Shown: piece after piece, positions 8,488 to 61,346 of the stretch
Position numbering within the stretch: position 1 is the stretch's first letter
Layout of the letters: every line of letters starts with the position of its first letter
IMG/VR virus record: IMGVR_UViG_3300025121_000282
Span: 248,001-312,000 of that record
Strand: one strand, 5' to 3'
DNA: 64,000 nt
Notes under the pieces: model-generated
Databases searched by the model: none
The model's input: the letters and a program-made list of their open reading frames with translations, nothing else
Told to the model about the DNA's origin: nothing
Translations under genes and position numbers: made by a program

Positions 8488-8493
8488 AACAAA

Positions 8494-11439: not shown

Positions 11440-11474
11440 ACTGCAGTATCCTAAACGTCCATGCCGTATTCTCT

Positions 11475-12374: not shown

Positions 12375-12377
12375 GTC

Positions 12378-12995: not shown

Positions 12996-12997
12996 TT

Positions 12998-17735: not shown

Positions 17736-18461
17736 TTACCGGTCGGGGCGAGGGGCAGACGCCGGGTGAGCGGCGCCATACAAAGCACTTCCGCCGCCTA
17801 CATCTCTAAACGGGTTGTTACCGGTATTCATGGCATAGAATGTGTCTACACCTTGGAACCCATGATGGCTCACTATGTCAGTGACCTTTGCAGAAACCTG
17901 TTCGTCTATGGCATTGCCGTCAGCAGCTATGCCAGTTTGGCCATAACTTTCAACCCAACAGCCCTCATACCAAGTGACCACAGCACTTGTAACACCATTA
18001 ACTCTGGCGTCAAAATCGGCGTCTGCGGCTCGGGTTGTCATGCCATCGCCGCCGCCATTGTCCATCACATTTCTGTGTGCTAGTTCGGAGAACACCATTT
18101 CCTGCTTGAGATCGAATGGCCATCTATGGTACCTGATGGACCTTACAGCACCGGCAACACCACCTCTGTAGCCCAATTGCTGGTGCAAGTTAAGCACATA
18201 CAGCAAGCGACGAGTTATCGAGATGGTTGCCTCAGCGGTATTGCCGGGTACGATTTCCTGCACTCGGTCGCCATAACCGATACCTCTGACAGCAACCATC
18301 TCTCGGCTCTCGGCTTCCTGAGTAAACTCAGAAGAGACGCCTATCTGACTGGCTGTAGCCTCACCGTATGACACCGTGTATATTTTTACTTTTTGAGAAA
18401 CAGCAACATTTGTGTTGGGTGTTGCCCCTTCTCGGTAGATATAGCCTGCATTTAGTGCCAT
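17736..18461 (-). CDS. Tail tube protein
   Basis: 241 aa, downstream of the sheath; tube-like motifs (IGYGDRVQEIVPG, RSIRYHRWPFDL, WYEGCWVESY). Confidence 0.8.
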   Translation of the reverse strand: MALNAGYIYREGATPNTNVAVSQKVKIYTVSYGEATASQIGVSSEFTQEAESREMVAVRGIGYGDRVQEIVPGNTAEATISITRRLLYVLNLHQQLGYRGGVAGAVRSIRYHRWPFDLKQEMVFSELAHRNVMDNGGGDGMTTRAADADFDARVNGVTSAVVTWYEGCWVESYGQTGIAADGNAIDEQVSAKVTDIVSHHGFQGVDTFYAMNTGNNPFRDVGGGSALYGAAHPASAPRPDR

Positions 18462-18509
18462 GACTTACACTCCATCACTGATTTTCAGGCTACACCCAGC
18501 ACAAAACAA

Positions 18510-18869
18510 TTAGACAAGCTTCGGGTAAAGCTGGAAAACTGAGTTCTCAATCCGCTCAACAGCGGCAGTTACAGTTTCCGCAGGCTCGTCCTCAAGGGGC
18601 TCAACCGCGTTGGCAACATCAGCAATCGTGGCCTTGAGAGTGTCCATAGCAGCTGTGGTGTTCACACCATACTCAGCCGCATTTTCAAAAATTTCGGCAA
18701 CATTCGCCATGTGGGCCACAACAGCGGCTACTCGGGCCTTAGCCTCAGTATGCGCAGCCGTCTTGTTGTTACCCTCAGGCTTATCCTCGGTTGCACTGCG
18801 ACGAGCGGCAAGGCGAGCGGCAATGGCACTTTCGAGAGTAGCTACAGCAGAGGCGATCTTAGTTTCCAT
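18510..18869 (-). CDS. Ala-rich helical hypothetical virion protein
   Basis: Track 18510..18923. Likely start is the ATG at 18869 (METKIAS), preceded by GGAG. Confidence 0.6.
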   Translation of the reverse strand: METKIASAVATLESAIAARLAARRSATEDKPEGNNKTAAHTEAKARVAAVVAHMANVAEIFENAAEYGVNTTAAMDTLKATIADVANAVEPLEDEPAETVTAAVERIENSVFQLYPKLV

Positions 18870-18935
18870 CTTTATTTTCTCCGTTACAACGTACTGACAG
18901 TGTTCAGTTGAATCTGTTAACAAAAAGATTATTGA

Positions 18936-21900
18936 TTACAGCTTCACTCTTAAAGTAAAGGTTGTAACAATCCACAAGACCGGGAGTATGGTTTGGTATG
19001 CAGCTGAGACTTCCCAAATGGTAGGGTCATTGTCGTTAGGCTTAATTTTCACCTTGTCGTAGGCCCCAATGATTTGAACCCCAACTTCTTGGCCCAAATA
19101 ATCTTTTACAGTCTTCTCGGCATCTCCAACTAGAGAGCCTACATTTTTCTGCCCGATGTACTTGTTCAACGCGGTGCGGACGCCTCGCTGAATTCGGTGT
19201 TTAACCTGAATCACAGACGGAGTTCTGGTCAACACCGAGGACATATCGGTAGTAACCGAATGGCGTACTTCTATTCTGGAGCCTACAGTATGGACCAGGG
19301 TGATACCAGCGCTGGCCACCTGATTCATTGTAACTTCATCCATCGTGCGCATCATCTTCTTGAAGCCAACTATGGGCTTAGAAGTGAAATCTGTAGCCTC
19401 ATCGTAAGACAGGCTTACAAACCTGCCAGCATAAGCAGCAGCAACGATGGGTCCATCCACCAAAACGGTTGTAGTTCTACCTAACTCATCCACTAAGTCC
19501 ATGGACGCAGTATCAGGGTAAACTACCTGAACCAGTTCGTTTCCTATAGCTCGGGCTCTCAATTGAGCCGCTGTAGGAGTGGTTCCGGACGGGAAACCAA
19601 CAATACCTGTACGTTCTTTTCGGTTACGAATGCTGCTCATCATCTGGCAGTGTTCTCGTACCGATTGATGTACATCAGCGCTGCCCGTTAACGGGACTAC
19701 CACAGCAGGATTGGTCCCATTCGGGAGGGCTACTTTTAGGTCATTCAGTGCAGCAATGTAAACAGAGGCCGAGGCATCAGCCGCACCCGACGATTTAAAT
19801 ACCTGCTTACAAGCCACTGCCGAGGCCCCATTTCGAATAGCAAGCCAAGCTGCTAGCGACAACCTATTGGCTGGGTTTACCGGCCCGTACTCACGAACTA
19901 CGTCATTCATGTCCGTGAAAATTTTTGGGGTTATGTCAGTTTTGGTGTAAGACCAATCGACGTAGTAACTGTCACCAATCGCGGGCTCGGCCTCTCCACT
20001 AGAACGGTCGAAGGTTTCAACCTTTGCACTGTCTCCAACGGCCACACTCAAAGTATTGGCCACTACTACGCTCAACCCTGGGATGGAATATGTCGGGGTG
20101 TTAGCACTGGCTGTATGCGTTCTGGTTACAGTGAGTCGGAAAGAGGAGTCCTCATCGTAATCAGCTTCAGATGGCAAAACCGTAAACCGTAAGCCAGTCA
20201 CGCTATCGGTGTAAGTTACACCAACAAAGCCATCCGAACCAGTCCCATCGTCACTAAGAACAGAGTCATCAGCAGACCCAGTACCACTAGCCTGATTGCT
20301 GTAAACGTAAAAACCTTGCTGGGAACCTTGACCTGAATCAGTATCACCTGCTGAAACACCAAGAACTTCCCACGCGTTCAACACCTGGGCGTCGTCCTCT
20401 GCCGATGCAAACGTGACCGCTGTTGAAGTGCCAGAGCTTCTGGTTCTGATTCTAAGGAAGGTTCCGCTGGCCCCCTCAGTGGGGTCCGTGACCGTGTCTG
20501 CTACAAAATTTGACCGGAAAGTGTTAGCAACAGGTGCAGTGAAGTTTCCGCCATCGTGTGCGTTTAGCACAGTTGCTAAATCAATTGCCGAAACCATGGT
20601 CGAGTTTGCAACTACTGCTGCCGTGAAGCCCAACAGCCCATTGGCTACAACGTTTGCTCCAATGGTAATGTTTGACGTGTCTCCTTCCGAGGGGGAGAGC
20701 AACATCAATCGGTCACCACCAGCCTGCCAGTCGGAAATGTATGCCACATCAGGCACTTCGCCTGCGCCGTACACGGCAACAAGGGTGGCATCCACGCTGG
20801 TAACAGCATTAATTGCCACAGCAACAGCTGCAGTAGTGATAGCCCCACCATCAGGCAGTGTAACTACAATGTCTACACCATCTACGCTAAACGAGAAATC
20901 GGTGTCAGCTGCTATCGCGTATGGACCAGCAACAGACCCACGTTGCCAAGCCGGCATTGTGGTGGCTCTAGAAACACCATATACCTTGGTACCCATAACC
21001 AAACCAAGGTCGGTTACATCAAGCTGGTCTCCCGAGACCGCTGTACCTATCACTTCTATGTATTTAGAAGTAGTAGACATGTCACCAATGGCAGTGTCAA
21101 CCCCTGCCTCATCCTCAAGAACCCCGGGAGCAGCCGAACCCTTGATAACGAGGTGACCATATCCAGCCTGATTCGCGTCAACTCTAAATGTGGCGCAATC
21201 AGCTAGTTGGGCATTTATCTTAACGACAATGTCGGCAATTGTATCGTCTGCTTCTATGGCAGCAGTTTCTATGCTCGTTCCATCAATGTCAAAAGCTACC
21301 TTTTTTCCAAGCCAAGCTGCTTGGTATGCTCCGTTTACATACCCACCTACTAAGTGAGCCTTGACTATAGAGGTGGCCAGTTCAATTGGAGCAACTGCCG
21401 TGTTGGACGGAACCGGACGGAACTGGTCGCTAAACCCAACTCTCAAGTCATACGATTCGGAATTGCCAACTACATACTGTGCGGGTTCTTTCAAGTAATT
21501 CTTGAAAACTACAGTAACTATCTCATCAAGAGAAGTTCCGCCGTAGTGGATGGCATCGGGCTGGCTTTCAGAACCAGACGGCCAAGCCACCGAAACCGCA
21601 GGGGCGTTTCCAGCCAACCCAGGTTTTGAAAATCTTACCTGTCGTAGTATAGTACTATTTTGACCTGTAACAGTGTAGGTTCCCGTTCCAGAACCGCCTG
21701 CAGCCACAACGGCTAAGTTGTAAGCAGACGTGTCATACGCATCTGCAAGTCTGTTGTACCAAAAGGTTGCGTATGCCTTATGATCAGGAGGGATAGGACT
21801 GGACAGAGTAACTTTTCTACTTGATGACTCTACTTTAGAAACAGTTATTGCTGGTCTATTCAGGGCATCCCTAACATCAACACCGTGATACACACTCACT

Positions 21901-35909: not shown

Positions 35910-36281
35910 TTACGTGGATGCGGACTTAATTTTGGTAGCTTCGATAAAGTCTATTTCTGTTCTCTCTATTCGTATAACTGGCACGCGCTGCTCTATTAGT
36001 TTGCCTACTGTGTAGGGGTCATACGGGACCAATGAAACAGCCTTACCAGCGTTGTCAAATTCTACTACAACATTTAGTCCACCAAATGTTGGATTTAGCC
36101 ACACTTCAGATTCGTATAAATGGTCGTACACGAAAAAGTGACTCGCATTGTGGATAGTAAGTGGCCTGTCCGATTTTGCACCCTTGGTTTGGACTAGAAC
36201 GTGTGCTGTTCTACCTTTCTTACTGCCACAATGCTCACATTTACCAAAATTTTTGGAAGTGAGAAGCTTGTGATCCGTCAT
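35910..36281 (-). CDS. Hypothetical protein
   Basis: 123 aa, ATGA-coupled to the upstream gene. Confidence 0.6.
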   Translation of the reverse strand: MTDHKLLTSKNFGKCEHCGSKKGRTAHVLVQTKGAKSDRPLTIHNASHFFVYDHLYESEVWLNPTFGGLNVVVEFDNAGKAVSLVPYDPYTVGKLIEQRVPVIRIERTEIDFIEATKIKSAST

Positions 36282-36586
36282 ATAATAATCCTTACGGTAA
36301 TGTCCGACTTAGCCAGCGGGTGTATTGGGTTTTTGGTAGGCACTATCACCGTGTCATTTAGCCATAAGATGGCTTCTGCGTGGCTTAAGTGTTGAGTTTC
36401 TGATGTTTTGTCAACTAAAGTCCAGAACTCTTCTTCTGGTATAACTATTTCTTCTAGTAGGCCGCAATACCCAGCAAAATTCATCCTGGTTTGCATAGCC
36501 CAAGCCAAACTAAAATAAAGTTTAGTTTTACCCTCAACTGTGAGCATGCGCTCACAAAGGGTGTCTATCTTTTGCATGTGTGTCAT
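36278..36586 (-). CDS. Hypothetical protein
   Basis: 102 aa; its SD (AAAGGA) directly follows the tRNA 3' end. Confidence 0.6.
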   Translation of the reverse strand: MTHMQKIDTLCERMLTVEGKTKLYFSLAWAMQTRMNFAGYCGLLEEIVIPEEEFWTLVDKTSETQHLSHAEAILWLNDTVIVPTKNPIHPLAKSDITVRIII

Positions 36587-36601
36587 ACATAGTCCTTTCG
36601 G

Positions 36602-36674
36602 TGCTCGCCCAGGGACTCGAACCCTGACCTGATCGATTTAGAGTCGACCCGCCTTGACATTTGGCCACACGAGC
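36602..36674 (-). tRNA. tRNA with CUA anticodon (amber suppressor type)
   Basis: GCTCGTG TG GCC AAATGTCAA GGC G GGTCGA CTCTAAA TCGATC AGGT CAGGG TTCGAGT CCCTG GGCGAGC A. Cloverleaf with a canonical T-arm and a C32 U33 CUA A37 A38 loop. Atypical points: G7.G66 mismatch, no D-loop GG, CCA not encoded (CCG). Confidence 0.85.
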
Positions 36675-36677
36675 GTG

Positions 36678-38213
36678 TTACTGTCTAAATAACACAAACT
36701 TTTTCTTTTCTTTACCAAACACTTTTACGTACCCTTTTGATTCAGCAAACTCCTTCTCTGTCATATGGCATCCAACGGCATGGTTGTATAAAGTCTTTTT
36801 GTGCATCATCCAACCAGTCGTGTCTACGTACACATAATCAGGCTTGGTAGTGGAAACATGTTCCCAATTTGAAGCTTGGTAGACGATGCCCTCATGGCCC
36901 ACGGTAGTATCGGCAAACGAAACTATTGCCTTGGTTTCTGGAAATTGGTCCCAGAAGTGTTTGGCCGATCTTGCTAAAAACCAAGACCCGAAATTAGGCT
37001 TGTGGCAGTCTGTTCTGATACAAAGTCTATCCAACTCCGACACTGTTTTTGGAGTAAGTCCTACTGAGGTGGACACCTCTTTTCTAACAACAGGAGCGAA
37101 CTTTGCCACTGCTATTAATTGGCCATCCAAGTAAGCCCCAAACATAAACTTTGCTTTACGACCACACTGGGCATAGTGCCAAGCTCTTAAAAATCTGTTA
37201 CCCTCAGAGTGCTCTATAGGCTTGACAATTAATTGGTTAAACTCGAATTCAGTTATTTTGGACTCGCTGACACCAATTACAGACTGAATTTTATCTTGAA
37301 CCAAATCAGGTATTAAAGTCTCATGCTCTTCTATACACAAAAGTAGTGAATCAGGGTTTGCAATTCTAAGATATGCTGATTTAGCAACGTCCCGCCTTTG
37401 GTTATTCGGAAGGTTGTGCCAATAATCACCTTGTACTTCAATGTATATATTAAAATCCGATAAATACAGGTCAAAATTATACGGACCCACAGATTTTTCT
37501 CTGGTGTATTTTATCTCAAGCAGGTCTAATACATCAGAAACCACTTTTTCAGGTTTAGACTGTCTGCCTGACCTAGAAAAGGCCTCTATACCAGCAGCTA
37601 TTTTAGCCCTGTACTCTGGATTTTTAAATCTTTCTTTTGCCAATTCACTGTGTATCTTTTTGTATTCTGGGTTCTGGATTGCCAAGTCATGGTTAGCTCT
37701 CGCCTCAGGCGTGTGCATTACTGACACTTTTTCCCTGAAGTATTTGTCTGGGTCGGCTTTATAATCCGCCTTGTTTCGTTCCGACACCAGCTGTTTATGC
37801 TGGTCTGACTGAAACATCTTGGTAATGCGGTCTTGCTGAAACTCCCTAAAATCTGGGTCTTCCCAAGCCTGTTTAGCTTGCTTAGACCTTTGGGCTCTGC
37901 CATCTTCAGAATTGGCTATGGCACCCAATATTTTTGACTGGTTGCTGACGTACTCTGGATTCGCCCAGGCTTGCTTGGATTGCTTAGACCTCTGAGCTTT
38001 TCCTTGAGGACTCTTAGCTCTGCACGGGGAACACCAGTATTCCCCGCGTTTTCTCAGAGTTCTATTTACAATAGACCTCTGATTGCATACAGACCTACCA
38101 CAACACTGATAGACTACCCACCCTCTTTGTTTAGGGGTGGGTAATCTATACCCAAAGTCTATTTCGTTGTGCTCTTGGTCGGAAATTTGTGCGTACAGTG
38201 TTGCTATATCCAT
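36678..38213 (-). CDS. Fusion: helical NUMOD-like repeats + DUF559/Vsr-like endonuclease + Mom-like GNAT domain
   Basis: KPEKVVSDVL...YNFDLYL....YIEVQGDYWH; C-term WHY...ELDRLC...SWFLARS...IVSFADTTVGHEGIVYQASNW. Confidence 0.75.
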   Translation of the reverse strand: MDIATLYAQISDQEHNEIDFGYRLPTPKQRGWVVYQCCGRSVCNQRSIVNRTLRKRGEYWCSPCRAKSPQGKAQRSKQSKQAWANPEYVSNQSKILGAIANSEDGRAQRSKQAKQAWEDPDFREFQQDRITKMFQSDQHKQLVSERNKADYKADPDKYFREKVSVMHTPEARANHDLAIQNPEYKKIHSELAKERFKNPEYRAKIAAGIEAFSRSGRQSKPEKVVSDVLDLLEIKYTREKSVGPYNFDLYLSDFNIYIEVQGDYWHNLPNNQRRDVAKSAYLRIANPDSLLLCIEEHETLIPDLVQDKIQSVIGVSESKITEFEFNQLIVKPIEHSEGNRFLRAWHYAQCGRKAKFMFGAYLDGQLIAVAKFAPVVRKEVSTSVGLTPKTVSELDRLCIRTDCHKPNFGSWFLARSAKHFWDQFPETKAIVSFADTTVGHEGIVYQASNWEHVSTTKPDYVYVDTTGWMMHKKTLYNHAVGCHMTEKEFAESKGYVKVFGKEKKKFVLFRQ

Positions 38214-38255
38214 ATATAACTATACAACCGTAACTATACGCTTTCGCAGTTACAT

Positions 38256-40679
38256 CTAACCCAAGTACACGTAGTCATCATGGAGAGCGCTGGTACCAAC
38301 CATCACCACGGGAAGTCCTGAGCAATTTTCCAGCATATCAATAAACGCTCTGGTTTCAGAGCTAAACTTGACTAATGCCTCTTTGCCCCCGCGCAGACCG
38401 ACGTCGATGTGGTTGATTTGATTCACAAAATTCAGTACAAGCTTGGTTGCACCGCAGGTTCTAGCAGCGTCCTTAAGCCCAATTTGGGAGAATGTCCCTA
38501 CGCGTCGAATGCGCTTAGTAACCGTGGTTCGCTCGCGTTCCGCCAACATTTTTGCCTCTTCCTCTGGCATGTTGGCTCTCTTTGCTATCTCATCCCAGGT
38601 CAATTCCTGTTGGTCGGGGTACCACCCTCCAGAATTCCCCAGTTCTTTGCCAGACTCGTCATACACGTTTCCAACCCTAATTGGGTGCGACCTTAAGTTT
38701 AAGTAGACGTCGCCCACCATGTTTGGGGGAATGGCCATATAGTCCATGGCTGCCTGAACTGTGCAGTTTCTAGAAGTGCAGTTTGGATAGTGTGAGCCGT
38801 GGTCAATACTCAGTGCATAGCCCTGGCTTCCTTCATGGAGCCAGTAGTCACCCTTACTGATGATTTTGTGGGTGGCATCACGAAATGCCATGCCGTTGGT
38901 GATTTGAATGTTTCCAGGGAGGTCTATTGGTGCTGGTGTGTTACCAACCAGGGGCACATTCTGCTTCCGTAAAACCTTATCAGCCAGGGCGGTCCCGGAA
39001 CCCTGCATAGTGGAGGCTAGGTGCTTGGTGCTTTCTGCTCCCTCACGCTCTCGTGCAGCGTGGTCCTCGGTTACAATACCTGCACGATCATGAACATAAA
39101 GGTCTGGTCCACCACACTCCTCATACTCCTTGATGAACTGTTCCCAACGAAAAGATGAACCGGGAGAAATCCATCCAGCAACCTCACGGCCAAGTGCTTT
39201 CTTCAGACCGCATGCGGTGGGCAGAGCCTTGGCTACAAACTTCCCATCTTTCAAATTCGGGTGAGCAATAGTGTTGTGTGAAATAGCACCATTGGCTAGA
39301 TAACTGTGGGTTTGGGGCATGGTTACATCAAAAACCCGTTCTTCCCCAATTGCCAAATTGACTTCTTTGATGTCTACTACATGATAGTCCTCGGCCAATT
39401 TAACTAAGCCGGTAAATCCAGCCGCTCGGAGTGTGGCGGCATTGCGTAAAACATACGCACCTGCGATGGCTCCATTCTCAGTTGAATTCGTGCTGTGTGC
39501 AGCTTTGCGTATTTGAATCAAACGGTTATAATTGAGATTGATGAGAGAGCCTTGAGACCAATCAGCATCGTATGTGGCTATTTCCACATTTAATCTAGCC
39601 GACTTGACCTCTGAAAGAAAACCTACTCGCTCACGAAAAAGGGTTAAATTTTCCAAACCCGCCATCTCAATTTGATGTGATCGACTGCGAGAAGGTCGCT
39701 TGTCCTGGTAGGACCGGTAAGTGGAATTAATACCCAACAACAATAATAACTGTTGGGCCATCAGCACCACATCTTTTGAAATGTTGCCAAAAGAAACCCT
39801 TCGCTTTTTGGCCGACCCATCCGAGTCAAACAGACCCCGCAGAAATGCTCCAATTATTTCAGGGGTGCCCACAGTGACAGCAGTCGGTATCTCTTTTTCG
39901 GCTTTAGTAGCTAGCTTCAACCCCACTTGTTCAAAGATCTGGCGAAGTTCGGAAATACTGCAGGTTTCCAGAACGTGGCACTGTTTGTCTTTTACCTTGT
40001 AAACATTCCATGGGATGCCGATGCCATCGTAAAATTTTTGAGTCTTGCAGCAAACATCCATCTGGTCAGAGTGGAACGCTATGCTAACATTTGCCTTTTT
40101 GGGACTGTAACACCCATCACCAACCAACAGCCCCAGGTATTCAGCCATTAATAATTCGTCTGGTTTATTTGTCAGTGCGGTTCCATTCGCTCTGTGTATC
40201 AGGGATAACATGTCTATAGGTAGACTGGTTCCCACCCAGTTAGTCTTTTTAGGAAATAAAAACTGGTGTACTCCAGGTACTAAATCCATTGACCGTATCC
40301 ACTGTGGGGCGTTTTCAGTGGGGTCCCAAACATAGTACTGATGTATGTCAGTACATTTGTACTCAATGCCATTCTTGAGTTTGATTTTGTTGACTACTCT
40401 AACCCCGTCATCAACCAAATCTGTAGGCGACTCCCAACAGCCGTCCATGTTGAGAAGCTGCAGACCCTTTTGGTTCTGAGTGACAATATCCCCAAGCTTT
40501 TTTAATCCCCGGTCAGTGGGGATTATGGCGTCAAAAGTTTGACAGTGGCCTGCATTGGGATAGTTGGCAGAAGACACATTTCGGACATTGAAAATATCCA
40601 CCAAACGAGACGACAAAGCTCCCTTACCTGAGCTACCCCAGGCTTGGTCGAGGACAACATTGAACTTTCCAGGCTGCAT
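38256..40679 (-). CDS. purZ: Adenylosuccinate-synthetase homologue with PurZ signatures, interrupted by an intein
   Basis: GSSGKG (Ser in place of the PurA catalytic Asp), NAGH|T, ASTMQG, EGSQGY...YPNCTSR, RSHPIRVG, NSGGWYPDQ.ELTW, TTVTKRIRR, NFVN. Confidence 0.8.
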   Translation of the reverse strand: MQPGKFNVVLDQAWGSSGKGALSSRLVDIFNVRNVSSANYPNAGHCQTFDAIIPTDRGLKKLGDIVTQNQKGLQLLNMDGCWESPTDLVDDGVRVVNKIKLKNGIEYKCTDIHQYYVWDPTENAPQWIRSMDLVPGVHQFLFPKKTNWVGTSLPIDMLSLIHRANGTALTNKPDELLMAEYLGLLVGDGCYSPKKANVSIAFHSDQMDVCCKTQKFYDGIGIPWNVYKVKDKQCHVLETCSISELRQIFEQVGLKLATKAEKEIPTAVTVGTPEIIGAFLRGLFDSDGSAKKRRVSFGNISKDVVLMAQQLLLLLGINSTYRSYQDKRPSRSRSHQIEMAGLENLTLFRERVGFLSEVKSARLNVEIATYDADWSQGSLINLNYNRLIQIRKAAHSTNSTENGAIAGAYVLRNAATLRAAGFTGLVKLAEDYHVVDIKEVNLAIGEERVFDVTMPQTHSYLANGAISHNTIAHPNLKDGKFVAKALPTACGLKKALGREVAGWISPGSSFRWEQFIKEYEECGGPDLYVHDRAGIVTEDHAAREREGAESTKHLASTMQGSGTALADKVLRKQNVPLVGNTPAPIDLPGNIQITNGMAFRDATHKIISKGDYWLHEGSQGYALSIDHGSHYPNCTSRNCTVQAAMDYMAIPPNMVGDVYLNLRSHPIRVGNVYDESGKELGNSGGWYPDQQELTWDEIAKRANMPEEEAKMLAERERTTVTKRIRRVGTFSQIGLKDAARTCGATKLVLNFVNQINHIDVGLRGGKEALVKFSSETRAFIDMLENCSGLPVVMVGTSALHDDYVYLG
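39273..40544 (-). mobile_element. Intein (424 aa) with LAGLIDADG homing endonuclease
   Basis: Starts CQTFDAII, ends VFDVTM...HSYLANGAISHN, with Thr at +1. LAGLIDADG blocks YLGLLVGDG and FLRGLFDSDG. Confidence 0.95.
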
Positions 40680-40681
40680 GA

Positions 40682-42370
40682 CTAAACTCTCCTAACCCAC
40701 TTGGTTTTTGGCACCTCTGATACTGTACAGAGACCGGTATACTCTACAAACTGTCGTTCTGTCATATGGTTTGACAGTGCTTGATCATACACAGTACGTT
40801 TGTGTATGTATCTCACTGTGACTGGGTCAAAATAATGATACGATTCCCCGGTCTGGCCCGCTTCAATAAAACTACAGGCTTTGTACAAGCCACCAGAATC
40901 ACCAACATTGGGGTCAGAAAATGAAACCAGTAACTTTAGCTTTGGGCTTTCTGATTTATAGGCACCAATTAACTTAGACATACAGTAAGAAGATAGATTA
41001 TTCACATCCAGTCCAGACCTTACGCAAAACCGTCTAATCTCTCTGACACTACCTGGATTCAACTTACCCAGCCCCAGTTGCTCTGCGGTTTTTTTGACAG
41101 TTCCGTGTCGGGTTACACCACCAAATACCAGCAAACACACCAATGTGTCCTTAAAATAAGCCCCATAGGGAGAGGCTGCTGTCCCCAAAGTGCCCAAGTA
41201 ATGATTGGTGGTTAGAAACACGTGGGCTTCTTTTAACGGAACAGGTCTAAACTCCAAGTCCGACAACTGAAATTGTATTGGTTCTTCAATGGCTCGCAAA
41301 ATGTGATAGTCCAACACTTTACGAAGTCTTCCCAGATGCAGTTCATGCTCCCATAACCACACTAACTTATACTTTGAATACTTTTCTATGTATGTAGCTT
41401 TGGCCTTATCTCTGGGTGTTCCAGAGTACCCGTTGTCTTTAAAATTGTGAAGATAATCACCATGGGTCTCTATCAACAAATTGCATAATGGTACATAAAA
41501 ATCAAACGAGTATGGGCCCACCGTGAAACTGCGTTCGAATGGAACCTTATAGTGGGACTCCAAAATGGAGGCTACTATCCTTTCTGTAGTAGGGTTCTGT
41601 AATTTCTCTTTGACACCCGGGATGTCAAAACCAGATTCTGACCCGTATAATTTCAGTAAGGTAGTTCTGCGTTTAATGGCTTTACATTTGGCAGACCCAC
41701 AGGTTAACGGGTGGGCCTGGGTGTAATACGACATCTTGGTTTCAGAGGTATTGTCACACACATAACACTTATAAATTATGGTCTTTTCACACAGTGGGAA
41801 TATTTTCGTGGCCTTGTACCCAAATTTAACAAACGTGGCATCGTCATCAGCCCATGCATAGTCTGGGGGCTTTCGTTTCGACAACCAAAAGTCATGCTTA
41901 CTTTGTGTGGATTCTTCGCGAATCCAAGTAGCAGCCACAGGACTGCACAGTTTGCAGCACACTACTTTGTTGCTTCTGGATAGACTTTGCAAACTGGTAG
42001 TGTACTGCTCTAGGCAAAATTCACATACAGCTTCAACAGCTTTTTCTGACCTTGGAGACAGTGTGTCTAGGCCATACCCATGTTTGGCTATGGTCAACAA
42101 AGAGTCTGCCCCAGCGGGCCGTTTAAGTACACTTAATAAATAGTACTCTCTAGGTGTTGTTTGTTTCTGCCTTACCCAATGAGATTTTAACTGATCGCAG
42201 CCCGAACAGGCATCTGGCGGAACGCGTCCAGGTTTGGAAAACTGATATTTCTTCCTCTCAAACACTTCTAAACAGAAATCGCATTGCACCACTACAGGTT
42301 TCTTAGACTGTGGCGCTAAGTCACTGTACCGATATCCGTATTTCTCAACAGTCAAGTCATCTTGGTGCAT
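40682..42370 (-). CDS. Fusion: three CxxC zinc-ribbon repeats + DUF559/Vsr-like endonuclease + Mom-like GNAT domain
   Basis: Repeats (T.xKxGY...S.K.V...CxxC) x3; ERIVASIL...YSFDFYV....LIETHGDYLH; NHY...EIRRFC...LVSFSDPNVGDSGGLYKACSF. Likely start is the ATG at 42370, 6 nt after TATAAT. Confidence 0.75.
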   Translation of the reverse strand: MHQDDLTVEKYGYRYSDLAPQSKKPVVVQCDFCLEVFERKKYQFSKPGRVPPDACSGCDQLKSHWVRQKQTTPREYYLLSVLKRPAGADSLLTIAKHGYGLDTLSPRSEKAVEAVCEFCLEQYTTSLQSLSRSNKVVCCKLCSPVAATWIREESTQSKHDFWLSKRKPPDYAWADDDATFVKFGYKATKIFPLCEKTIIYKCYVCDNTSETKMSYYTQAHPLTCGSAKCKAIKRRTTLLKLYGSESGFDIPGVKEKLQNPTTERIVASILESHYKVPFERSFTVGPYSFDFYVPLCNLLIETHGDYLHNFKDNGYSGTPRDKAKATYIEKYSKYKLVWLWEHELHLGRLRKVLDYHILRAIEEPIQFQLSDLEFRPVPLKEAHVFLTTNHYLGTLGTAASPYGAYFKDTLVCLLVFGGVTRHGTVKKTAEQLGLGKLNPGSVREIRRFCVRSGLDVNNLSSYCMSKLIGAYKSESPKLKLLVSFSDPNVGDSGGLYKACSFIEAGQTGESYHYFDPVTVRYIHKRTVYDQALSNHMTERQFVEYTGLCTVSEVPKTKWVRRV

Positions 42371-42478
42371 ACCTGCATTATACACAAAAGTGTGGCACTA
42401 ACGGCAAGGGTGCTATACATTAAAAATTACTTCGTACTTGGTTGTACAATACCATCAGACCCACAACAGGAAGACACA

Positions 42479-42739
42479 ATGAATAAGTTTGACATTGTCG
42501 ATGCTATCATGCAACCGCACAACATTAACTTTTCTTTTGCCAAAGGGGAGGTAGTGGCTTGTCTAACTTATCCAGGGCAGAACACTGTGGGGGGCATACC
42601 CATGGTGTTAAAACTTGAGACGAGCGGCCACAACTTTATGGTACAACCATTTGCGGCTGGAACAACCAAAGAAGAGGTTAAGGCTAGACTTTGTGATCAG
42701 GTAGACAGACTGTTTATGGCCATTGCCGATATTTTATAA
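42479..42739 (+). CDS. Hypothetical protein
   Basis: ATG at 42479 with SD AGGA. Confidence 0.6.
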   Translation: MNKFDIVDAIMQPHNINFSFAKGEVVACLTYPGQNTVGGIPMVLKLETSGHNFMVQPFAAGTTKEEVKARLCDQVDRLFMAIADIL

Positions 42740-42767
42740 TTTTGTTAGTATAATTAATAGAGCCTTA

Positions 42768-43334
42768 TTAAACTACCGCCACATTGGTGTGCGAGAAGAA
42801 GCTTCTGTTATTTTTGTCGTCTATCCCGATAGATATAATTTGGTCTGTTGGAATGTTTTTGTCTACTATAAGCCACGCACCCCACATTCTTCCCATCCCA
42901 CCTGCTCTGAGTACGTCGAGTCGAGTCTCAATTTCCAAGTCTTCTCGACCGAACCTCCTCACACCAGCATAAACCTTAGCTGACATTACTAGCCCCTCAG
43001 TAATTGCACCAATGTTTTCGTGCCCCTCCAGTATTGACTGAATCACACCGCTAGTTAGTGGGGGCACAAAAACCAGTCCACTTTCTACTGCCACAGAACT
43101 CTTCGCTGCTTGTGCCAGTGCGTCTGCAGCAAGATCTTTTAGGCTGTTTACTTGTGCAACCAATCGTTCAGTGTATACTGCTTCGTTCACATTGGGTACC
43201 AAAGCATCAAAAATCGGGCCAACTACTTCGGCCACGCCTTCGGGGAGTCCAGCTTGTTCAATAGAGTCCGCCAGGGCAGACAGCTGACTCGACTTTATGC
43301 GGAGCATAGAAACCATTTTATTTATACTAGACAC
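42768..43334 (-). CDS. Hypothetical protein; C-terminal half resembles a segment of a large-phage major capsid protein
   Basis: VMSAKVYAGVRRFGREDLEIETRLDVLRAGGMGRMWGAWLIVDKNIP (recalled resemblance only). Confidence 0.45.
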   Translation of the reverse strand: MSSINKMVSMLRIKSSQLSALADSIEQAGLPEGVAEVVGPIFDALVPNVNEAVYTERLVAQVNSLKDLAADALAQAAKSSVAVESGLVFVPPLTSGVIQSILEGHENIGAITEGLVMSAKVYAGVRRFGREDLEIETRLDVLRAGGMGRMWGAWLIVDKNIPTDQIISIGIDDKNNRSFFSHTNVAVV

Positions 43335-54329: not shown

Positions 54330-54977
54330 TTATGTGGATGTGTACTTTTTGGTGAAATACGATGTGGCGTGGGCGTTTAGATACGACCTGAAGAGTCTGT
54401 TGGGAATGCCTGCTTGTTTTGCAGTCTCCATTACATCAGAGTGTAAAGACTTCATTATACTGTAATTTATAGGGGACTTGATTTTAAATGAATGTTCCAT
54501 GTTTGGGTTGTGAGCATCACTTTCAGGACACGTACTTGGTAGTCGTTCGTGTACTGTATCCCCTCGATTTCGTATGTAATATTCCCACACACTTTGGGCT
54601 GGTCCAGTAACTCCATCTCGGTCTGGAATCACCCCCATACCATCTTCCTTGGCTACAGAAAGGGCTGTGTCATACAACAGTGGGCCATATCCCTTCTTAG
54701 CTGCTACAATGCTTATTTCGTAGTTGTAGCCGCACCCATCCGTAGCTAATTCCATACTTAAAATCCCAGTTATAGACTCTTTTAAAGTAGCAACAAAATT
54801 AGTCATCACATCCGGGTTTGTGTCTTTCTCTTTGCCGTATGTGTCTGCCGCGTTGTTAACTACCTGGGCGTCGTACATAATGAAGCTGTGGTCGCCCCCA
54901 TTATCGTTATGCTGAAGAGCCACATTGCTACTTGTGCTGTAGGCTACACATCGTAGTACTGCACTTAACTTGGTCAT
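54330..54977 (-). CDS. GNAT-like protein, paralog 1
   Basis: YEISIVAAKKGYGPLLYDTAL (acetyl-CoA motif A-like), VIPDRDGVTGPAQSVWEYY. Confidence 0.5.
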   Translation of the reverse strand: MTKLSAVLRCVAYSTSSNVALQHNDNGGDHSFIMYDAQVVNNAADTYGKEKDTNPDVMTNFVATLKESITGILSMELATDGCGYNYEISIVAAKKGYGPLLYDTALSVAKEDGMGVIPDRDGVTGPAQSVWEYYIRNRGDTVHERLPSTCPESDAHNPNMEHSFKIKSPINYSIMKSLHSDVMETAKQAGIPNRLFRSYLNAHATSYFTKKYTST

Positions 54978-55648
54978 GTGGACCTGTATTTAGTTCTAAA
55001 AAACACAGCAGACTGAATGCTCAGTGTGTTGATATAACTGTCCGCAGGAATTCCGGCTTTTTTGACCATGGTTACAAGCGATGTATGCCTACTTACAGCT
55101 TCTTCGTATTTTATTGGGGATTTTATGTAGTATTCGTACTCTAAGATGTCGTCACCCACGTCATTCCTGAGCGATGATTTACTTTCTGGACATTTGCCAC
55201 TAAGTGGGTGAGTAATTATGTCGTTTCTTCTATACTTGTAAAAATCCCAAACCCCCTGGGCTTTCCCAGACACCCCATCCCGGTCTGGAATCACCCCCAC
55301 ACCCTCGTTTTTGGCTATGGACAGGGCCACATCATACAGTAAGGGGCCATTTCCACCTATTGCTGCTGAGGAGGAGATTTCATAGTTACTACCACACCCG
55401 CTTGTAGCTGGTTCCATGGTGATGGTTCCCAGCACAGAAGACTTTAAAGAAACGAAAAAGTCGTCTATACAATCCGGGTTTTGTAATTTTTCTTTTTCAA
55501 ATTTTTCTATCGAGGATTTAACTACGTCATAATTGTACGCAGTTATGTCATAAGCATCAGAGCCATGGACTATGCATAAGGCCAAGTGCTTATCTACGAC
55601 GCCAACATCGTAGGCTATTTTACGTAGGTGAGCACTTAGTTTGAGCAC
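54974..55648 (-). CDS. GNAT-like protein, paralog 2
   Basis: YEISSSAAIGGNGPLLYDVAL, VIPDRDGVSGKAQGVWDFY. Confidence 0.5.
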   Translation of the reverse strand: MLKLSAHLRKIAYDVGVVDKHLALCIVHGSDAYDITAYNYDVVKSSIEKFEKEKLQNPDCIDDFFVSLKSSVLGTITMEPATSGCGSNYEISSSAAIGGNGPLLYDVALSIAKNEGVGVIPDRDGVSGKAQGVWDFYKYRRNDIITHPLSGKCPESKSSLRNDVGDDILEYEYYIKSPIKYEEAVSRHTSLVTMVKKAGIPADSYINTLSIQSAVFFRTKYRST

Positions 55649-58562: not shown

Positions 58563-61247
58563 TTACGGCAGGATGATGGGCTCGCCAACTCTTAAGAGAA
58601 GAGAAGAAGCGCCAATGGCAATACCCATGGGCAAAACTACATCGCCACTGCCGCTGGGGGCGGTGGCAGTGATCTGCCCGTCTGTGGTGGACAGGTATAG
58701 TGTCGCACCAGAAGTCCAAGCTCCACCACCGGCTCCCGATGCGATCTTGCCGAAGAGTGCAACGCGGATGGTGCTTGCCGTGTCCAGCGCAGAAGCGTCC
58801 AGCGCAACACCAGCTACCTGCGAGTTGGCAGCTGCATCAGCATCAGCAAGCTGCACCTTGCCATCAGCATCGATGTACACAACACTGCCAACATCCACGG
58901 CAGCATGTACAGCGGGTGTGTCAAAGTGCACGGCGAACGGAGCCGCTGCAGCACCAGTCTGGCCAACAACCAAACCACCTGAACCTACGATCTTAACTTT
59001 CTGGTTGGTGGTTGCATTGCCGAACGAGATGACCTCAGCACCATCGGTGGTGTCAAGGGTCAGGTATGCATTTGTGCTCTCGCCAATCACCAACGAGGTG
59101 GCAGAGTTGTCTACGATCCCGTAGGTCGAAGCAGCAGCAGCACTCAGGTTAAGTGCACCGGCAGAGGTGAGCGCCAAAGTACCAGAAGTAATGGTGCTTA
59201 GGGTAAGACTGCCGCTGGTAGCGCTGACGTTCGAGTTGCCTGTACCGTCGATGCTAAACACGCCTGAAGACAGAATGTCTACAGTGCCCGTCACATCAAT
59301 GTCCAGGTTGGCGCCCGCATTCAAGTCCACGAGGCCAACGCTATCCAGGACTAGGGTGCCCGAGGTAAGCGTCGAAAGCGTCAGGTTACCACCTGTGACG
59401 GAGACGTTTGAGGCGCTTGTGCTGTCAATGGAGAACGAGGCCCCATCCACCGAGAAGGCCGAGGCCCCCACGTTATACGTGAACGTACCCGTCGTCTGTC
59501 CGACGTTGCCCGTGAAGGTCGTCACACCACTCTGGGCCAGTGTCCCGGCATTCTCGATACCCGCGTCGAAGCCCGAGATGGACAGACCTACCGAAGCACC
59601 CGCACCCGCATTCGTCGCGCCGGTCAGCTTCACACCGTAGATGTCCCCGGCATTGTTGAACGAGGTTGCATTACTCAGGTCAACCACGATGCCATTCGAC
59701 GTACCCGTGAAGGCCGAGGCCGCATACACAATACTCAGGGTGCCAACGTTTTCAGTCGTCTTGGCTTGCGTCAGTGCAACTGCACCGTTGTCTACAGTGA
59801 TACCGACACCACCGTTGTAGGCCCCATCAAGTGTAGCCCCACCACTTGCTTCCAAGCTCACCCAAGCTGCACCCGTCCGGTACTTCAGGGTCGAAGTAGT
59901 GGAGTCGTAAAGGAGGTCACCGGCTGCGGGGACCGCGATGTTGTCGGTGATCTCCTGGGTCGTGAAAACCGGCAGACTCAAAAGCACCTGGGCGTCGGTG
60001 CCAAGCTTCACGCGGTCATTCGCATCCAGGCTGGTGATCGTGTCGACGTAGGCAGCCGAGAACGCTGCCGCCGACGTGCCGAGCGTGACGGTCGAGTCCG
60101 CACTCGGGTACATGCTGCCGTTGCCGACGATCACTTGATCGGCGTTGTTCGCGAACAGGTGCAGTAGGCCGCCAGCCATGCCGCCACCGATGGAGAAGTC
60201 TCCACCGCCGGTGATCATCGTGGCCCCGCCCTTGGGGATCATCGTGCCGTCACCATTGACGCGGAGCAGTTCGTTGCCGGAGTTGTTCTTGACCACGAAC
60301 CCGGTCGCGGTCGTGTCGGCGCCGAGCATCATCACGATGTCGGAAGCGACGGCGACGTTGTCGAACCGCAGCTCGCCCGTCGCCGATGTCGCGACCGTAT
60401 TCGTGCCGTCGTGCTGGATCGCGAAGTCGGATCCGGTGCCAATCGTGATGCTCACCGAATCCGGCAGCATCGCGCCGCCCGTGAGCGTCGCGAGATCGTC
60501 GGCGGCCAGCGTTCCGACGCGCAGCGGAAGCGCGTCAAGGACGGCATCGCCGCCAAGGCGGCCGGTCAGGTGCGCGACCACCCACACGTCGTTCGTCTCG
60601 TCGTACACGAGACCGTGGAACGGCGAGTAGATCGAGACCGCCTCGGTGTCCGCGGGCTGCGTGGTCCAGGCAGAAGCGACCGTCGCGATATTCGAGATCC
60701 CGTTGTACTCGGTGACGAGCCGGACGTTGTCGCCCGCGCTCTTCAGCCACATGCCGGTGTAGTAGTCGTTCGTGGCGCTGCCGCCCGCGAGCTTCACCTG
60801 GACGTTCGTCATGCCCGTCTGATCGCCAATATCGGCAATCGTCGCGACGAGCGCGTTCGCGTCTGTCACCACATCACCGGTGCCGACATCATTCGCGGCC
60901 TGATACCGCTGCGCGGCATACCCGGCATTCGCGGATCCGGACGGCCCCGCGTTCACCAGCGCAATGTTGTCGTCGACCTCCATGATCGTGCTATTAACCG
61001 TAGTAGTAGTCCCGTTTACGGTTAAATTACCAGTAATGGTGACACCATCTGCAAACACAGCAGCCCCTGTAAAGGACTTACTGTTCAGGGCAAGGTCTCC
61101 GCCCAGCGACAACGTGGAGTTGCCAGCACCACCACCTAGGGTGATAACACCAGCTGCAGCGCCCAAATCAAAGGACGTACCATCGAGGCCTAGACTCAAC
61201 GACGACGTTTTACGTACGCCACCGTCCAGTACTAAAATTTGTGCCAT
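58563..61247 (-). CDS. Fibre-like virion protein (G/A/T/S-rich) with a high-GC internal segment and a C-terminal cement/DUF2190-like domain
   Basis: 894 aa; GNLTVNGTTTTVNS motif, low-complexity beta repeats, C-term VGSVVYIDADGKVQLADA...LYLSTTDGQITATAP. Confidence 0.8.
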   Translation of the reverse strand: MAQILVLDGGVRKTSSLSLGLDGTSFDLGAAAGVITLGGGAGNSTLSLGGDLALNSKSFTGAAVFADGVTITGNLTVNGTTTTVNSTIMEVDDNIALVNAGPSGSANAGYAAQRYQAANDVGTGDVVTDANALVATIADIGDQTGMTNVQVKLAGGSATNDYYTGMWLKSAGDNVRLVTEYNGISNIATVASAWTTQPADTEAVSIYSPFHGLVYDETNDVWVVAHLTGRLGGDAVLDALPLRVGTLAADDLATLTGGAMLPDSVSITIGTGSDFAIQHDGTNTVATSATGELRFDNVAVASDIVMMLGADTTATGFVVKNNSGNELLRVNGDGTMIPKGGATMITGGGDFSIGGGMAGGLLHLFANNADQVIVGNGSMYPSADSTVTLGTSAAAFSAAYVDTITSLDANDRVKLGTDAQVLLSLPVFTTQEITDNIAVPAAGDLLYDSTTSTLKYRTGAAWVSLEASGGATLDGAYNGGVGITVDNGAVALTQAKTTENVGTLSIVYAASAFTGTSNGIVVDLSNATSFNNAGDIYGVKLTGATNAGAGASVGLSISGFDAGIENAGTLAQSGVTTFTGNVGQTTGTFTYNVGASAFSVDGASFSIDSTSASNVSVTGGNLTLSTLTSGTLVLDSVGLVDLNAGANLDIDVTGTVDILSSGVFSIDGTGNSNVSATSGSLTLSTITSGTLALTSAGALNLSAAAASTYGIVDNSATSLVIGESTNAYLTLDTTDGAEVISFGNATTNQKVKIVGSGGLVVGQTGAAAAPFAVHFDTPAVHAAVDVGSVVYIDADGKVQLADADAAANSQVAGVALDASALDTASTIRVALFGKIASGAGGGAWTSGATLYLSTTDGQITATAPSGSGDVVLPMGIAIGASSLLLRVGEPIILP

Positions 61248-61273: not shown

Positions 61274-61346
61274 AGGAATTAGATGTGAGGAATTAGATGT
61301 GAGGAATTAGATGTGAGGAATTAGATGTGAGGAATTAGATGTGAGG
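61274..61346. repeat. Intergenic tandem repeat, 14-bp unit AGGAATTAGATGTG x5 plus AGG
   Basis: Five identical units at 61274, 61288, 61302, 61316 and 61330, with no spacers. Confidence 0.97.

Follow-up and report, generated by a model that had tools for sequence, protein, structure and literature searches.

A PurZ-like gene split by an intein in a 315-kb groundwater phage

Does a jumbo phage carry the enzyme that lets some phages replace adenine with 2-aminoadenine (Z), and if so does its own DNA contain that base? The question is raised by an open reading frame within the window, the 64,000-nucleotide stretch analysed here, which covers bases 248,001-312,000 of the 314,886-bp viral contig IMGVR_UViG_3300025121_000282. 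From sequence alone, the initial annotation had described a PurZ-type synthetase with Ser for the PurA catalytic Asp and an NFVN motif in place of the guanine-specific motif, in a large contractile-tailed phage with no clear datZ, mazZ or dpoZ in the window, and had inferred that the phage may carry Z or a Z-derived base. The observation proved to be correct. The frame is uninterrupted, with no internal stop, and encodes an adenylosuccinate-synthetase-type extein split at NAGH|T by an intein. Each of the five motifs that had been listed is present, and excision of the intein leaves exactly the 383 residues expected (Table 1). The match of the protein to Pfam Adenylsucc_synt has an E-value of 5.7e-17, and the C-extein matches the PurZ of phiVC8 (6FKO) at 3.4e-22 and that of S-2L (7ODX) at 4.3e-19, so that the similarity is more than chance. 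Nor is the locus an assembly artefact, as it is assembled identically in three groundwater runs, once as a single 54.7-kb contig, and is identical in several samples taken over years. The large size of the phage is confirmed. That it is contractile-tailed has only weak support, from PHROG baseplate-hub and tail-lysozyme matches at E about 1e-4, and no sheath protein was found among the window ORFs. Pfam and PHROG scans of about 50 of these ORFs were mostly empty. A DNA search of positions 36000-43000 against GenBank phages found no match, and there is no cultured close relative.

Table 1. Features of the purZ-like locus, in window coordinates. P numbers denote proteins of the library searched and L numbers related loci.
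Feature	Position (strand)	Length	Description	Support
Precursor ORF	38256..40679 (-)	807 aa plus TAG stop	PurZ-like extein interrupted by an intein	Identical to P0121
N-extein	40545..40679 (-)	Residues 1-45	Holds the P-loop; ends in N-A-G-H, the catalytic His	NF038379, E 3.4e-5
GSSGKG	40637-40620		P-loop; Ser16 at the PurA Asp13 position	
Intein	39273..40544 (-)	Residues 46-469, 424 aa	Class-1, inserted as NAGH|C...SHN|T; Cys1 (C46), T-D-I-H block B, C-terminal S-H-N469, T470 at +1; LAGLIDADG homing-endonuclease domain	LAGLIDADG_3, 65.6 bits (cut-off 22.5); TIGR01443 intein C-terminal model, 21.6 bits (cut-off 15.6); same insertion site in P0123, P0128, P0136 and the L039 gene
C-extein	38259..39272 (-)	Residues 470-807, 338 aa	Holds EGSQGY, YPNCTSRN, RSHPIRV plus a long loop insertion, TTVTKRIRR and NFVN	
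RSHPIRV	38693-38673			
NSGGWYPDQ	38636-38610			
TTVTKRIRR	38528-38502			
NFVN	38432-38421			
Mom1	36678..38213 (-)	511 aa	Downstream neighbour; Zn-ribbon and repeated DNA-binding-type modules, then an I-Bth0305I/Vsr-like endonuclease domain, then a Mom methylcarbamoylase domain	Pfam Mom (PF25680), 98.5 bits (cut-off 27.1)
Mom2	40682..42385 (-)	567 aa	Upstream neighbour; paralogue of Mom1 with the same endonuclease-Mom architecture	Pfam Mom (PF25680), 68 bits (cut-off 27.1); 30% identical to Mom1 over 299 aa, E 2e-38
tRNA(CUA)	36600..36674 (-)		Amber suppressor type; directly downstream of Mom1 and part of the same inserted island	

The residues that distinguish PurZ from PurA were mapped onto the extein. 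Ser16 takes the place of PurA Asp13 (S14 in phiVC8, S23 in S-2L), and Phe327 and Asn329 replace the guanine-specific Lys331 and Asp333, equivalent to F295 and N297 of phiVC8 and F306 and Q308 of S-2L. Pro242, Tyr263, Trp271 and Thr294 are likewise PurZ-like, the last of these opening T294-T295-V296-T297, the equivalent of the loop tip that lies over the reactants in PurZ. The positions equivalent to K16, N38, H41, T129, R143, Q224, V273, T301 and R305 (E. coli numbering) are all kept, and every residue that contacts dGMP, ATP and aspartate in the PurZ structures is kept or conservatively replaced. The roles of these residues have been described for the S-2L and phiVC8 structures (PMC8342488) and in the metaGPA preprint (10.1101/2025.10.22.683976), and the Ser in place of Asp13 is also described in PMC12884076. 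As in PurZ, the PIR motif is followed by Val (V245) and an inserted loop, here of 21 residues; in PurZ this loop crowds the 2'-OH (PMC8342488), but its effect on the choice of sugar here is inferred only. Sugar specificity cannot be read from the sequence, as the residue equivalent to PurA R303 is Arg. The copy in the window departs from its family at 10 of 141 conserved positions, more than any other member. One of these changes is Tyr to Gln at the residue that stacks on adenine (Y298 in phiVC8).

An ordinary PurA, making adenylosuccinate from IMP to boost the supply of AMP and dAMP, would be an alternative, and sources indeed annotate the family as adenylosuccinate synthase. The catalytic Asp13, however, is conserved in 99% of 251 PurA-group sequences (PMC12884076), whereas all 120 family members examined have Ser, as do the 124 with a recognisable P-loop among the 150 nearest cluster representatives. 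The guanine-binding Lys and Asp are replaced by Phe and Asn/Gln, and the family is virtually absent from cellular genomes, with 2 MAG contigs among 185,579 species. The C-extein scores 112.8 bits with NF003295, the archaeal short-PurA model, and 74 bits with TIGR00184, against cut-offs of 368 and 395. The PurZ model (NCBIfam NF038379) is not reached either. The C- and N-exteins score 140.4 and 23.2 bits, and the intein-less relatives P0002, P0003 and P0027 score 178-195 bits, against a cut-off of 300, and the archaeal PurA model scores almost as high as that of PurZ. Amongst solved structures the best matches by sequence are phiVC8 PurZ (82.7 bits) and S-2L PurZ (72.5 bits), at only 30-33% identity, followed by Pyrococcus horikoshii PurA (54.6 bits), PurZ0 (53.4 bits) and E. 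coli PurA (30.7 bits). An AlphaFold2 model of the closest intein-less relative, P0001 (pLDDT 97), has as its best Foldseek match phiVC8 PurZ with ATP and dGMP (6FM1, E 1.7e-31). By fold, on the other hand, P. horikoshii PurA (5K7X/2D7U), which has the catalytic Asp and uses GTP and IMP, is as close as PurZ, with a target-normalised TM-score of 0.90 (rmsd 2.4 Å) against 0.84. Taken together, a PurA-type role is very unlikely.

To place the protein more precisely a maximum-likelihood tree, one of the checks that had been proposed for this locus, was rooted on E. coli PurA; it included no archaeal sequence, neither short-type PurA nor the four archaeal Ser/Gly sequences of PMC12884076. PurZ0 branches first (100/99), and the window protein lies in the remaining clade with PurZ (97/86). 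It is nested in a jumbo-phage family (97/97) that is outside the PurZ subclade (100/99), the only one characterised biochemically. PurZ0 of actinophages (Gordonia phage Archimedes, 7VF6; Wayne; Ghobes) shares the Ser, the TTVT loop and phage origin, but keeps the guanine-specific Asp (D302 in Ghobes, D326 in Wayne), is the least similar of the Ser-type references (23% identity in the structural comparison) and occurs in genomes that carry dutZ and dmtZ (PMC12884076). The family of the window protein comprises at least 493 non-redundant proteins, almost all on phage contigs of 200-436 kb. It differs from the characterised PurZ in two clade-specific insertions, after PIRV and before TTVT, and in the size of the phages, since phiVC8, S-2L and their like are 40-65 kb sipho- or podoviruses. 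Inteins recur in the family at two active-site motifs, which is usual for genes under strong constraint.

We next asked whether the usual partners of PurZ are present. Sequence searches (phmmer) with three DatZ, MazZ, DUF550, three DpoZ, DutZ/DmtZ and DUF5664-type neighbours from phiVC8, S-2L, Bhz20, Wayne, Ghobes and BCSR129 were run against the window and the related loci. The only hit was the phage's own PolA, which is only remotely like any DpoZ (E 1e-7). The absence of datZ, mazZ and dpoZ from the window is therefore confirmed, and no homologue of these, or of DUF550, dutZ or dmtZ, was found in about 161 of the 315 kb of this genome (the window plus about 97 kb of flanking sequence) or beside 30+ related genes. 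Nor was there any HD, MazG, dUTPase or NDT Pfam hit in this part of the genome. Profile-profile alignment (hhalign) of 29 conserved neighbour families of the relatives with the same references gave probabilities below 6% in every case. In 15 of 16 relatives the gene lies next to ThyX, with a dNMP-kinase-like gene within 10 kb in 12 of them, and in L005 an NDT-like gene lies about 1 kb upstream of purZ. A further conserved neighbour, g189, has a confident AlphaFold2 model (pLDDT 86) but gave no PDB fold match and no Atlas lead. Profiles of ThyX and g189 were also used to look for a nucleotide-metabolism cluster in this genome, but the window's contig was not among the hits.

It would seem more likely than not that the gene encodes a PurZ-type synthetase made as an 807-aa precursor. 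In this view the intein, sitting in the catalytic motif, splices itself out to leave the 383-aa enzyme, which like phiVC8 and S-2L PurZ would use ATP (or dATP) rather than GTP to phosphorylate O6 of dGMP and then add aspartate, giving N6-succino-2-amino-2'-deoxyadenylate. Host PurB and kinases would turn this into dZTP, and the phage's own family A polymerase could then put Z opposite T. The homology, the intact catalytic set, the PurZ-specific substitutions, the position in the tree and the anatomy of the intein rest directly on the analysis, while the substrates, the splicing and any Z in the DNA are inferred. The interpretation in the initial annotation is thus partly supported: the call holds at the level of the enzyme, though outside the characterised PurZ clade, and synthesis of a Z precursor is likely, but a Z-substituted genome is no more than plausible. 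Because no gene for removing dATP or converting dGTP to dGMP was found, replacement of A may be only partial, or may depend on unrecognised enzymes. The tetranucleotide GATC is under-represented (observed/expected 0.65), as are CATG and ATAT, which for GATC argues weakly against complete replacement of A.

The separate clade, its insertions, its scores below the PurZ cut-off, the lack of canonical Z helper genes next to 30+ family members and the different conserved partners (ThyX, the dNMP-kinase-like gene and g189) could also mean that these are Ser-type enzymes with a different job. They may act on another purine nucleotide, for example GMP, dIMP or a modified dGMP, or make 2-aminoadenine nucleotides for something other than bulk substitution of DNA, such as manipulation of the pool, a precursor of a hypermodified base, or low-level Z. 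This is possible but unlikely, given the retained ligand contacts and neighbours that are deoxynucleotide enzymes, as a dZ route needs.

Z-genomes are so far tied to small sipho- and podoviruses with a compact purZ-datZ-mazZ(-dpoZ) cluster. If the clade is active, Z metabolism would extend to jumbo phages from groundwater and many other habitats and would use a different gene set, which current PurZ models and cluster-based searches miss. This would change estimates of how common non-canonical purines are in viral DNA, point to new enzymes for removing dATP and supply new parts for making Z-DNA. If the clade does something else, it is a new reaction in the PurA superfamily. A more far-reaching possibility, which is not excluded but is doubtful, is that a large, overlooked group of jumbo phages makes 2-aminoadenine DNA with a divergent PurZ and without DatZ, MazZ or DpoZ. 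Exclusion of dATP and supply of dGMP would then fall to unrelated, still unknown enzymes, for which g189, the 250-aa gene upstream of purZ in the relatives, the dNMP-kinase-like gene and, in some lineages, the NDT-like gene are candidates. In this phage the two flanking Mom-domain enzymes might then methylcarbamoylate the N6 of Z (or of A), giving a Z-derived hypermodified base.

The surroundings of the gene in this phage differ from those in its relatives, and the initial annotation had missed both that the two flanking genes are homing-endonuclease-Mom fusions and that the gene looks like an acquired island. It lies in a tail/baseplate gene region rather than with the replication genes, is flanked by the two fusion genes and the tRNA(CUA), and looks horizontally acquired; none of the module genes of the relatives has a homologue in the 161 kb examined. 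The protein has the longest branch in the family, and its 10 departures from family-invariant residues compare with a median of 1. The gene may even be a mere recently acquired passenger of selfish elements, the intein and the two endonuclease genes, that contributes little or is decaying. We consider this unlikely, since the frame is intact, all catalytic residues and intein splicing residues are present, the start matches that of the family and the locus is identical in several samples. No intein-less or Mom-less variant was seen among the sequencing reads, and a search through a flanking gene for relatives with the empty site returned only the contig itself. Read-through from purZ into Mom1 at the TAG stop, using the tRNA(CUA), was considered and rejected, as further stops lie in the 42-nt spacer. 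Recoding of TAG is not evident, as TAG ends 13 of 50 long ORFs and genes are not broken at TAG.

A family profile of Mom1 matches the catalytic domain of the homing endonuclease I-Bth0305I (3R3P) at E 1.1e-11 through its middle domain and Mom of phage Mu (8BV8) at E 2.3e-10 through its C-terminal domain. The two activities are predicted from these matches alone, and to our knowledge no such fusion is known. Mom1 is probably a mobile gene, and a link to the function of PurZ remains hypothetical. Homologues 51% and 44% identical to it sit directly after purZ in L040 and L044, so that a Mom1-like gene travels with purZ there, but they are absent in the other 13 relatives that carry purZ beside ThyX. 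Both the intein sites in two active-site motifs and these fusions are useful material for studying mobile elements in phages, and the fusion genes are multi-copy in other jumbo-phage contigs.

The ORF on the minus strand that holds the PurZ-like gene is a single open frame of 807 codons ending in TAG. The initial annotation had proposed a PurZ-type synthetase here, and every motif it listed (GSSGKG, RSHPIRV, NSGGWYPDQ, TTVTKRIRR and NFVN) is present where it had been placed, so the observation is confirmed. The frame is a fusion of two things, a PurA/PurZ-type protein being cut after N-A-G-H (residue 45) by a 424-residue intein (residues 46-469). The intein begins with Cys, has a T-D-I-H block B and a LAGLIDADG_3 domain (65.6 bits), and ends in S-H-N followed by Thr. 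Removing it restores N-A-G-H-T, the catalytic-His motif of the superfamily, and gives the 383-aa protein that the initial annotation had described. The locus is assembled identically in at least three groundwater metagenome runs, once as a single 54.7-kb contig, and no variant joints were seen.

The best solved relatives of the C-extein are PurZ of phiVC8 (82.7 bits) and PurZ of S-2L (72.5 bits), followed by P. horikoshii PurA (54.6), PurZ0 (53.4) and E. coli PurA (30.7). In an alignment with reference enzymes all the catalytic and ligand residues of E. coli PurA are kept, namely K16, N38, H41, T129, R143, Q224, V273, T301 and R305. The changes specific to PurZ are also present: Asp13 is replaced by Ser16, Lys331 by Phe327 and Asp333 by Asn329, the aspartate loop reads T-T-V-T, and P-I-R-V is followed by an inserted loop. 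These are the positions that the S-2L and phiVC8 structures use to explain the choice of dGMP and ATP (PMC8342488), and most of them also rank among the residues that best separate proteins of dZ-enriched contigs from proteins of canonical contigs in a metagenome association study (10.1101/2025.10.22.683976). The protein matches PurZ at S14, P233, Y244, W252, T262, F295 and N297, and departs from it at Y298, which is Gln. PurZ0 keeps the guanine-specific Asp, so the protein is not a PurZ0 and is inferred to be of the ATP type. While PMC12884076 states that PurZ0 and PurZ prefer ATP and GTP "respectively", the order appears to be swapped. The retained Asp in PurZ0, the ATP/dATP use shown for S-2L PurZ (PMC8342488) and what was reportedly found in the original PurZ0 paper all point to the opposite order, and we treated PurZ as using ATP. 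A plain PurA-type metabolic gene is contradicted by the loss of the catalytic Asp and of the guanine pocket, and we consider this explanation very unlikely.

A careful maximum-likelihood tree of 50 sequences, rooted on E. coli PurA and without archaeal short PurA sequences, splits off PurZ0 first (100/99), and all the remaining Ser-type proteins form one clade (97/86). Inside this clade the characterised PurZ enzymes form one subclade (100/99), while the window protein lies in a different subclade of 21 rows (100/99), nested among proteins from jumbo-phage contigs (97/97). An AlphaFold2 model was made of the closest intein-less relative (P0001, 66% identical, pLDDT 97) rather than of the spliced protein itself. 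Its best Foldseek match is phiVC8 PurZ bound to ATP and dGMP (E 1.7e-31), then S-2L PurZ, and then P. horikoshii PurA with an equally good TM-score. On the NCBIfam PurZ model the family scores 178-195 bits, against a cut-off of 300, and it scores only about 5 bits less on the archaeal short-PurA model. By every residue that could be checked it would work like a PurZ, though it is not a member of the characterised PurZ equivalog. A Ser-type enzyme with another substrate or purpose is possible, but would seem unlikely.

To investigate how widely the family is distributed, a protein library at 90% identity was searched, which gave 493 relatives at E below 1e-5 among 2,316 scored candidates. The best 120 are 53-62% identical and 365-423 aa long, and many sit on contigs of 200-436 kb. 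All 120 have Ser at the Asp13 position, and 120 of 120 read N-F-x-Q-Y where the window has N-F-V-N-Q. An exhaustive search of representatives at 50% identity gave 768 proteins at E below 1e-10, and of the top 150 the 124 with a recognisable P-loop all have G-S-x-G-K-G. Among 185,579 species genomes the family occurs in only two MAG contigs, and it has no close counterpart in GenBank phages, where the best match is 33% identical, to Bacillus phage vB_BpsS-140. No paper linking PurZ with jumbo phages was found in the literature searched. Inteins recur in the family at two active-site motifs, N-A-G-H|C and Y-P-x|C-T-S-R. While the chemistry is probably known, the clade, its size, its hosts (jumbo phages), its different gene neighbourhood and the intein are new.

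The window covers bases 248,001-312,000 of a 314,886-bp viral contig from groundwater. Around the gene it encodes mostly large proteins without family matches, of which a few have weak baseplate-hub, tail-lysozyme, tail-fibre and virion-protein matches. The purZ-like gene lies in an accessory stretch with a metallophosphoesterase, a nucleotidyltransferase, small ORFs and a tRNA with anticodon CUA (amber suppressor type), which ARAGORN labels Pyl. Even so, TAG ends 13 of 50 long ORFs in the window, including purZ, and genes are not visibly broken at TAG.

Both immediate neighbours, here called Mom1 and Mom2, are paralogues with 30% identity. Each has an N-terminal Zn-ribbon and repeated S..K..W.(D/N)PE(Y/F) modules, then a Vsr-like domain matching the catalytic domain of the homing endonuclease I-Bth0305I (3R3P, E 1.1e-11), and then a domain matching the Mom methylcarbamoylase of Mu (Pfam 98.5 and 68 bits; 8BV8, E 2.3e-10). 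Such fusions are multi-copy, with two to three copies per locus, in other jumbo-phage contigs that lack purZ nearby. Close homologues of Mom1 (51% and 44% identity) sit directly after purZ in two relatives, but are missing in the other 13 that carry purZ beside ThyX. This patchy, target-linked pattern fits free-standing homing-endonuclease genes better than an obligatory partnership with PurZ, though the fusions could also be single-chain modules of a nuclease plus a protective modification.

In 15 of 16 relatives purZ lies in a conserved module, purZ - g189 - ThyX, and a dNMP-kinase-like gene is within 10 kb in 12 of them. The g189 product is a protein of roughly 190 aa, for which the AlphaFold2 model is confident (pLDDT 86, pTM 0.80) but has no PDB fold match and no Pfam family. 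A family of roughly 250 aa just upstream of purZ is equally without an assignment. None of these module genes has a homologue in the parts of the phage genome that were seen. The purZ-like gene, perhaps together with Mom1, was therefore probably acquired horizontally, although this is inferred rather than demonstrated. That it is a little-used passenger of selfish elements we regard as improbable.

Coordinates of the features in the window, in other assemblies of the same phage and in related loci
Source	Position (strand)	Feature
Window	38256..40679 (-)	PurZ-like precursor ORF
Window	40544-39273	Intein
Window	36678-38213 (-)	Mom1, endonuclease-Mom fusion
Window	40682-42385 (-)	Mom2, endonuclease-Mom fusion
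Window	36600-36674 (-)	tRNA, anticodon CUA
Window	61274-61346	14-nt tandem array
Window	58563-61247 (-)	894-aa gene
Window	6611-6664	27-nt tandem duplication
Window	54575-54705 and 55237-55367	131-nt direct repeat
Window	54330-54977 and 54974-55648	Adjacent genes linked by the 131-nt repeat
L040 (relative with purZ)	3075-4529	Endonuclease-Mom fusion
L044 (relative with purZ)	7152-8717	Endonuclease-Mom fusion
L027, L028, L029, L031 (other loci)		Endonuclease-Mom fusions
L020, with homologues in L034-L066 (related loci)	11236-11805 (-)	g189
L035 (related locus)	5924-6679	Example of the roughly 250-aa family upstream of purZ
L005 (related locus, 275-kb contig)	8518-8904 (+)	NDT-like protein
L075 (same phage, right of the window)	17929-21129	1066-aa MJ0330_N-type protein
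L077 (same phage, right of the window)	11255-14128	957-aa N6/N4 DNA methyltransferase with a LAGLIDADG_2 domain
L078 (same phage, right of the window)	10741-13572	943-aa DnaB helicase with an intein
L067, L067 and L082 (same phage, just beyond the window's right end)	5058-5729, 3315-4178 and 11519-13063	Two PARP-domain proteins, one with WGR and PARP regulatory domains, and an R2K-type ATP-grasp protein

Known dZ phages carry HD-type DatZ, MazZ or DUF550, PolA-type DpoZ or dUTPase/NDT genes within about 3 kb of purZ (PMC12884076). Consistent with the initial annotation, which saw no clear datZ, mazZ or dpoZ, none of these was found in the window, nor within 10 kb of purZ in over 30 related loci, by phmmer or by profile-profile comparison. 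The exception is NDT-like (nucleoside 2-deoxyribosyltransferase) Pfam matches near the purZ of some relatives. The one that was located lies about 1 kb and two genes upstream of a purZ-like gene in L005, and at 25.4 bits is just under the cut-off; NDT-like enzymes were recently linked to dZ metabolism. We then walked about 94 kb beyond the right end of the window through other assemblies of the same phage, and about 161 of the 315 kb, roughly half of the genome, were examined in all. In the walk we found PARP-domain proteins, an ATP-grasp protein, helicases, class II ribonucleotide reductase, clamp loader, NAD-dependent ligase, RecA, SbcCD, primase, an intein-bearing DnaB, a methyltransferase with a LAGLIDADG insert and a 925-aa family A polymerase, which is only remotely like any DpoZ (E 1e-7). 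There was no HD, MazG, dUTPase, NDT, dNMP-kinase or ThyX hit, though the Pfam and PHROG libraries recognise few of the proteins of this phage. The genome is rich in inteins and LAGLIDADG inserts, examples being a 1066-aa MJ0330_N-type protein, the 957-aa N6/N4 DNA methyltransferase with a LAGLIDADG_2 domain and the 943-aa DnaB helicase with an intein.

It would seem most likely that the gene encodes a self-splicing precursor yielding an ATP-dependent dGMP:aspartate ligase that makes the dZMP precursor, with host PurB and kinases completing the synthesis of dZTP. Our analysis establishes the homology, the residue pattern, the position in the tree and the anatomy of the intein, while the substrates, the splicing and any Z in the DNA are inferred from these. 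The interpretation in the initial annotation, that the gene encodes a PurZ-type synthetase and that this large phage may carry Z or a Z-derived base, is only partly supported: we consider the mechanism at the level of the enzyme more likely than not, but substantial Z substitution of the phage DNA is doubtful. Several points argue against a fully substituted genome. The helper genes are missing from the parts examined, and the window copy is the most divergent member of its family, with 10 departures at 141 conserved positions. In addition, over 98 kb made up of the window and three stretches from other assemblies of the same phage (L071, L074 and L077), GATC (observed/expected 0.65), ATAT (0.62) and CATG (0.78) are under-represented, which would be unexpected if every A were modified, although the signal is weak and could be inherited. 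CTCGAG and GAGCTC are absent from the same 98 kb.

Repeats were also seen elsewhere in the window. A perfect tandem array of the 14-nt unit AGGAATTAGATGTG, in about five copies, lies in the gap upstream of the 894-aa gene. A perfect 27-nt tandem duplication inside the 688-aa gene with the weak baseplate-hub/lysozyme match keeps the reading frame, adding nine codons. The 131-nt direct repeat, with 73% identity between its copies, links two adjacent genes, which therefore look like tandem paralogues.
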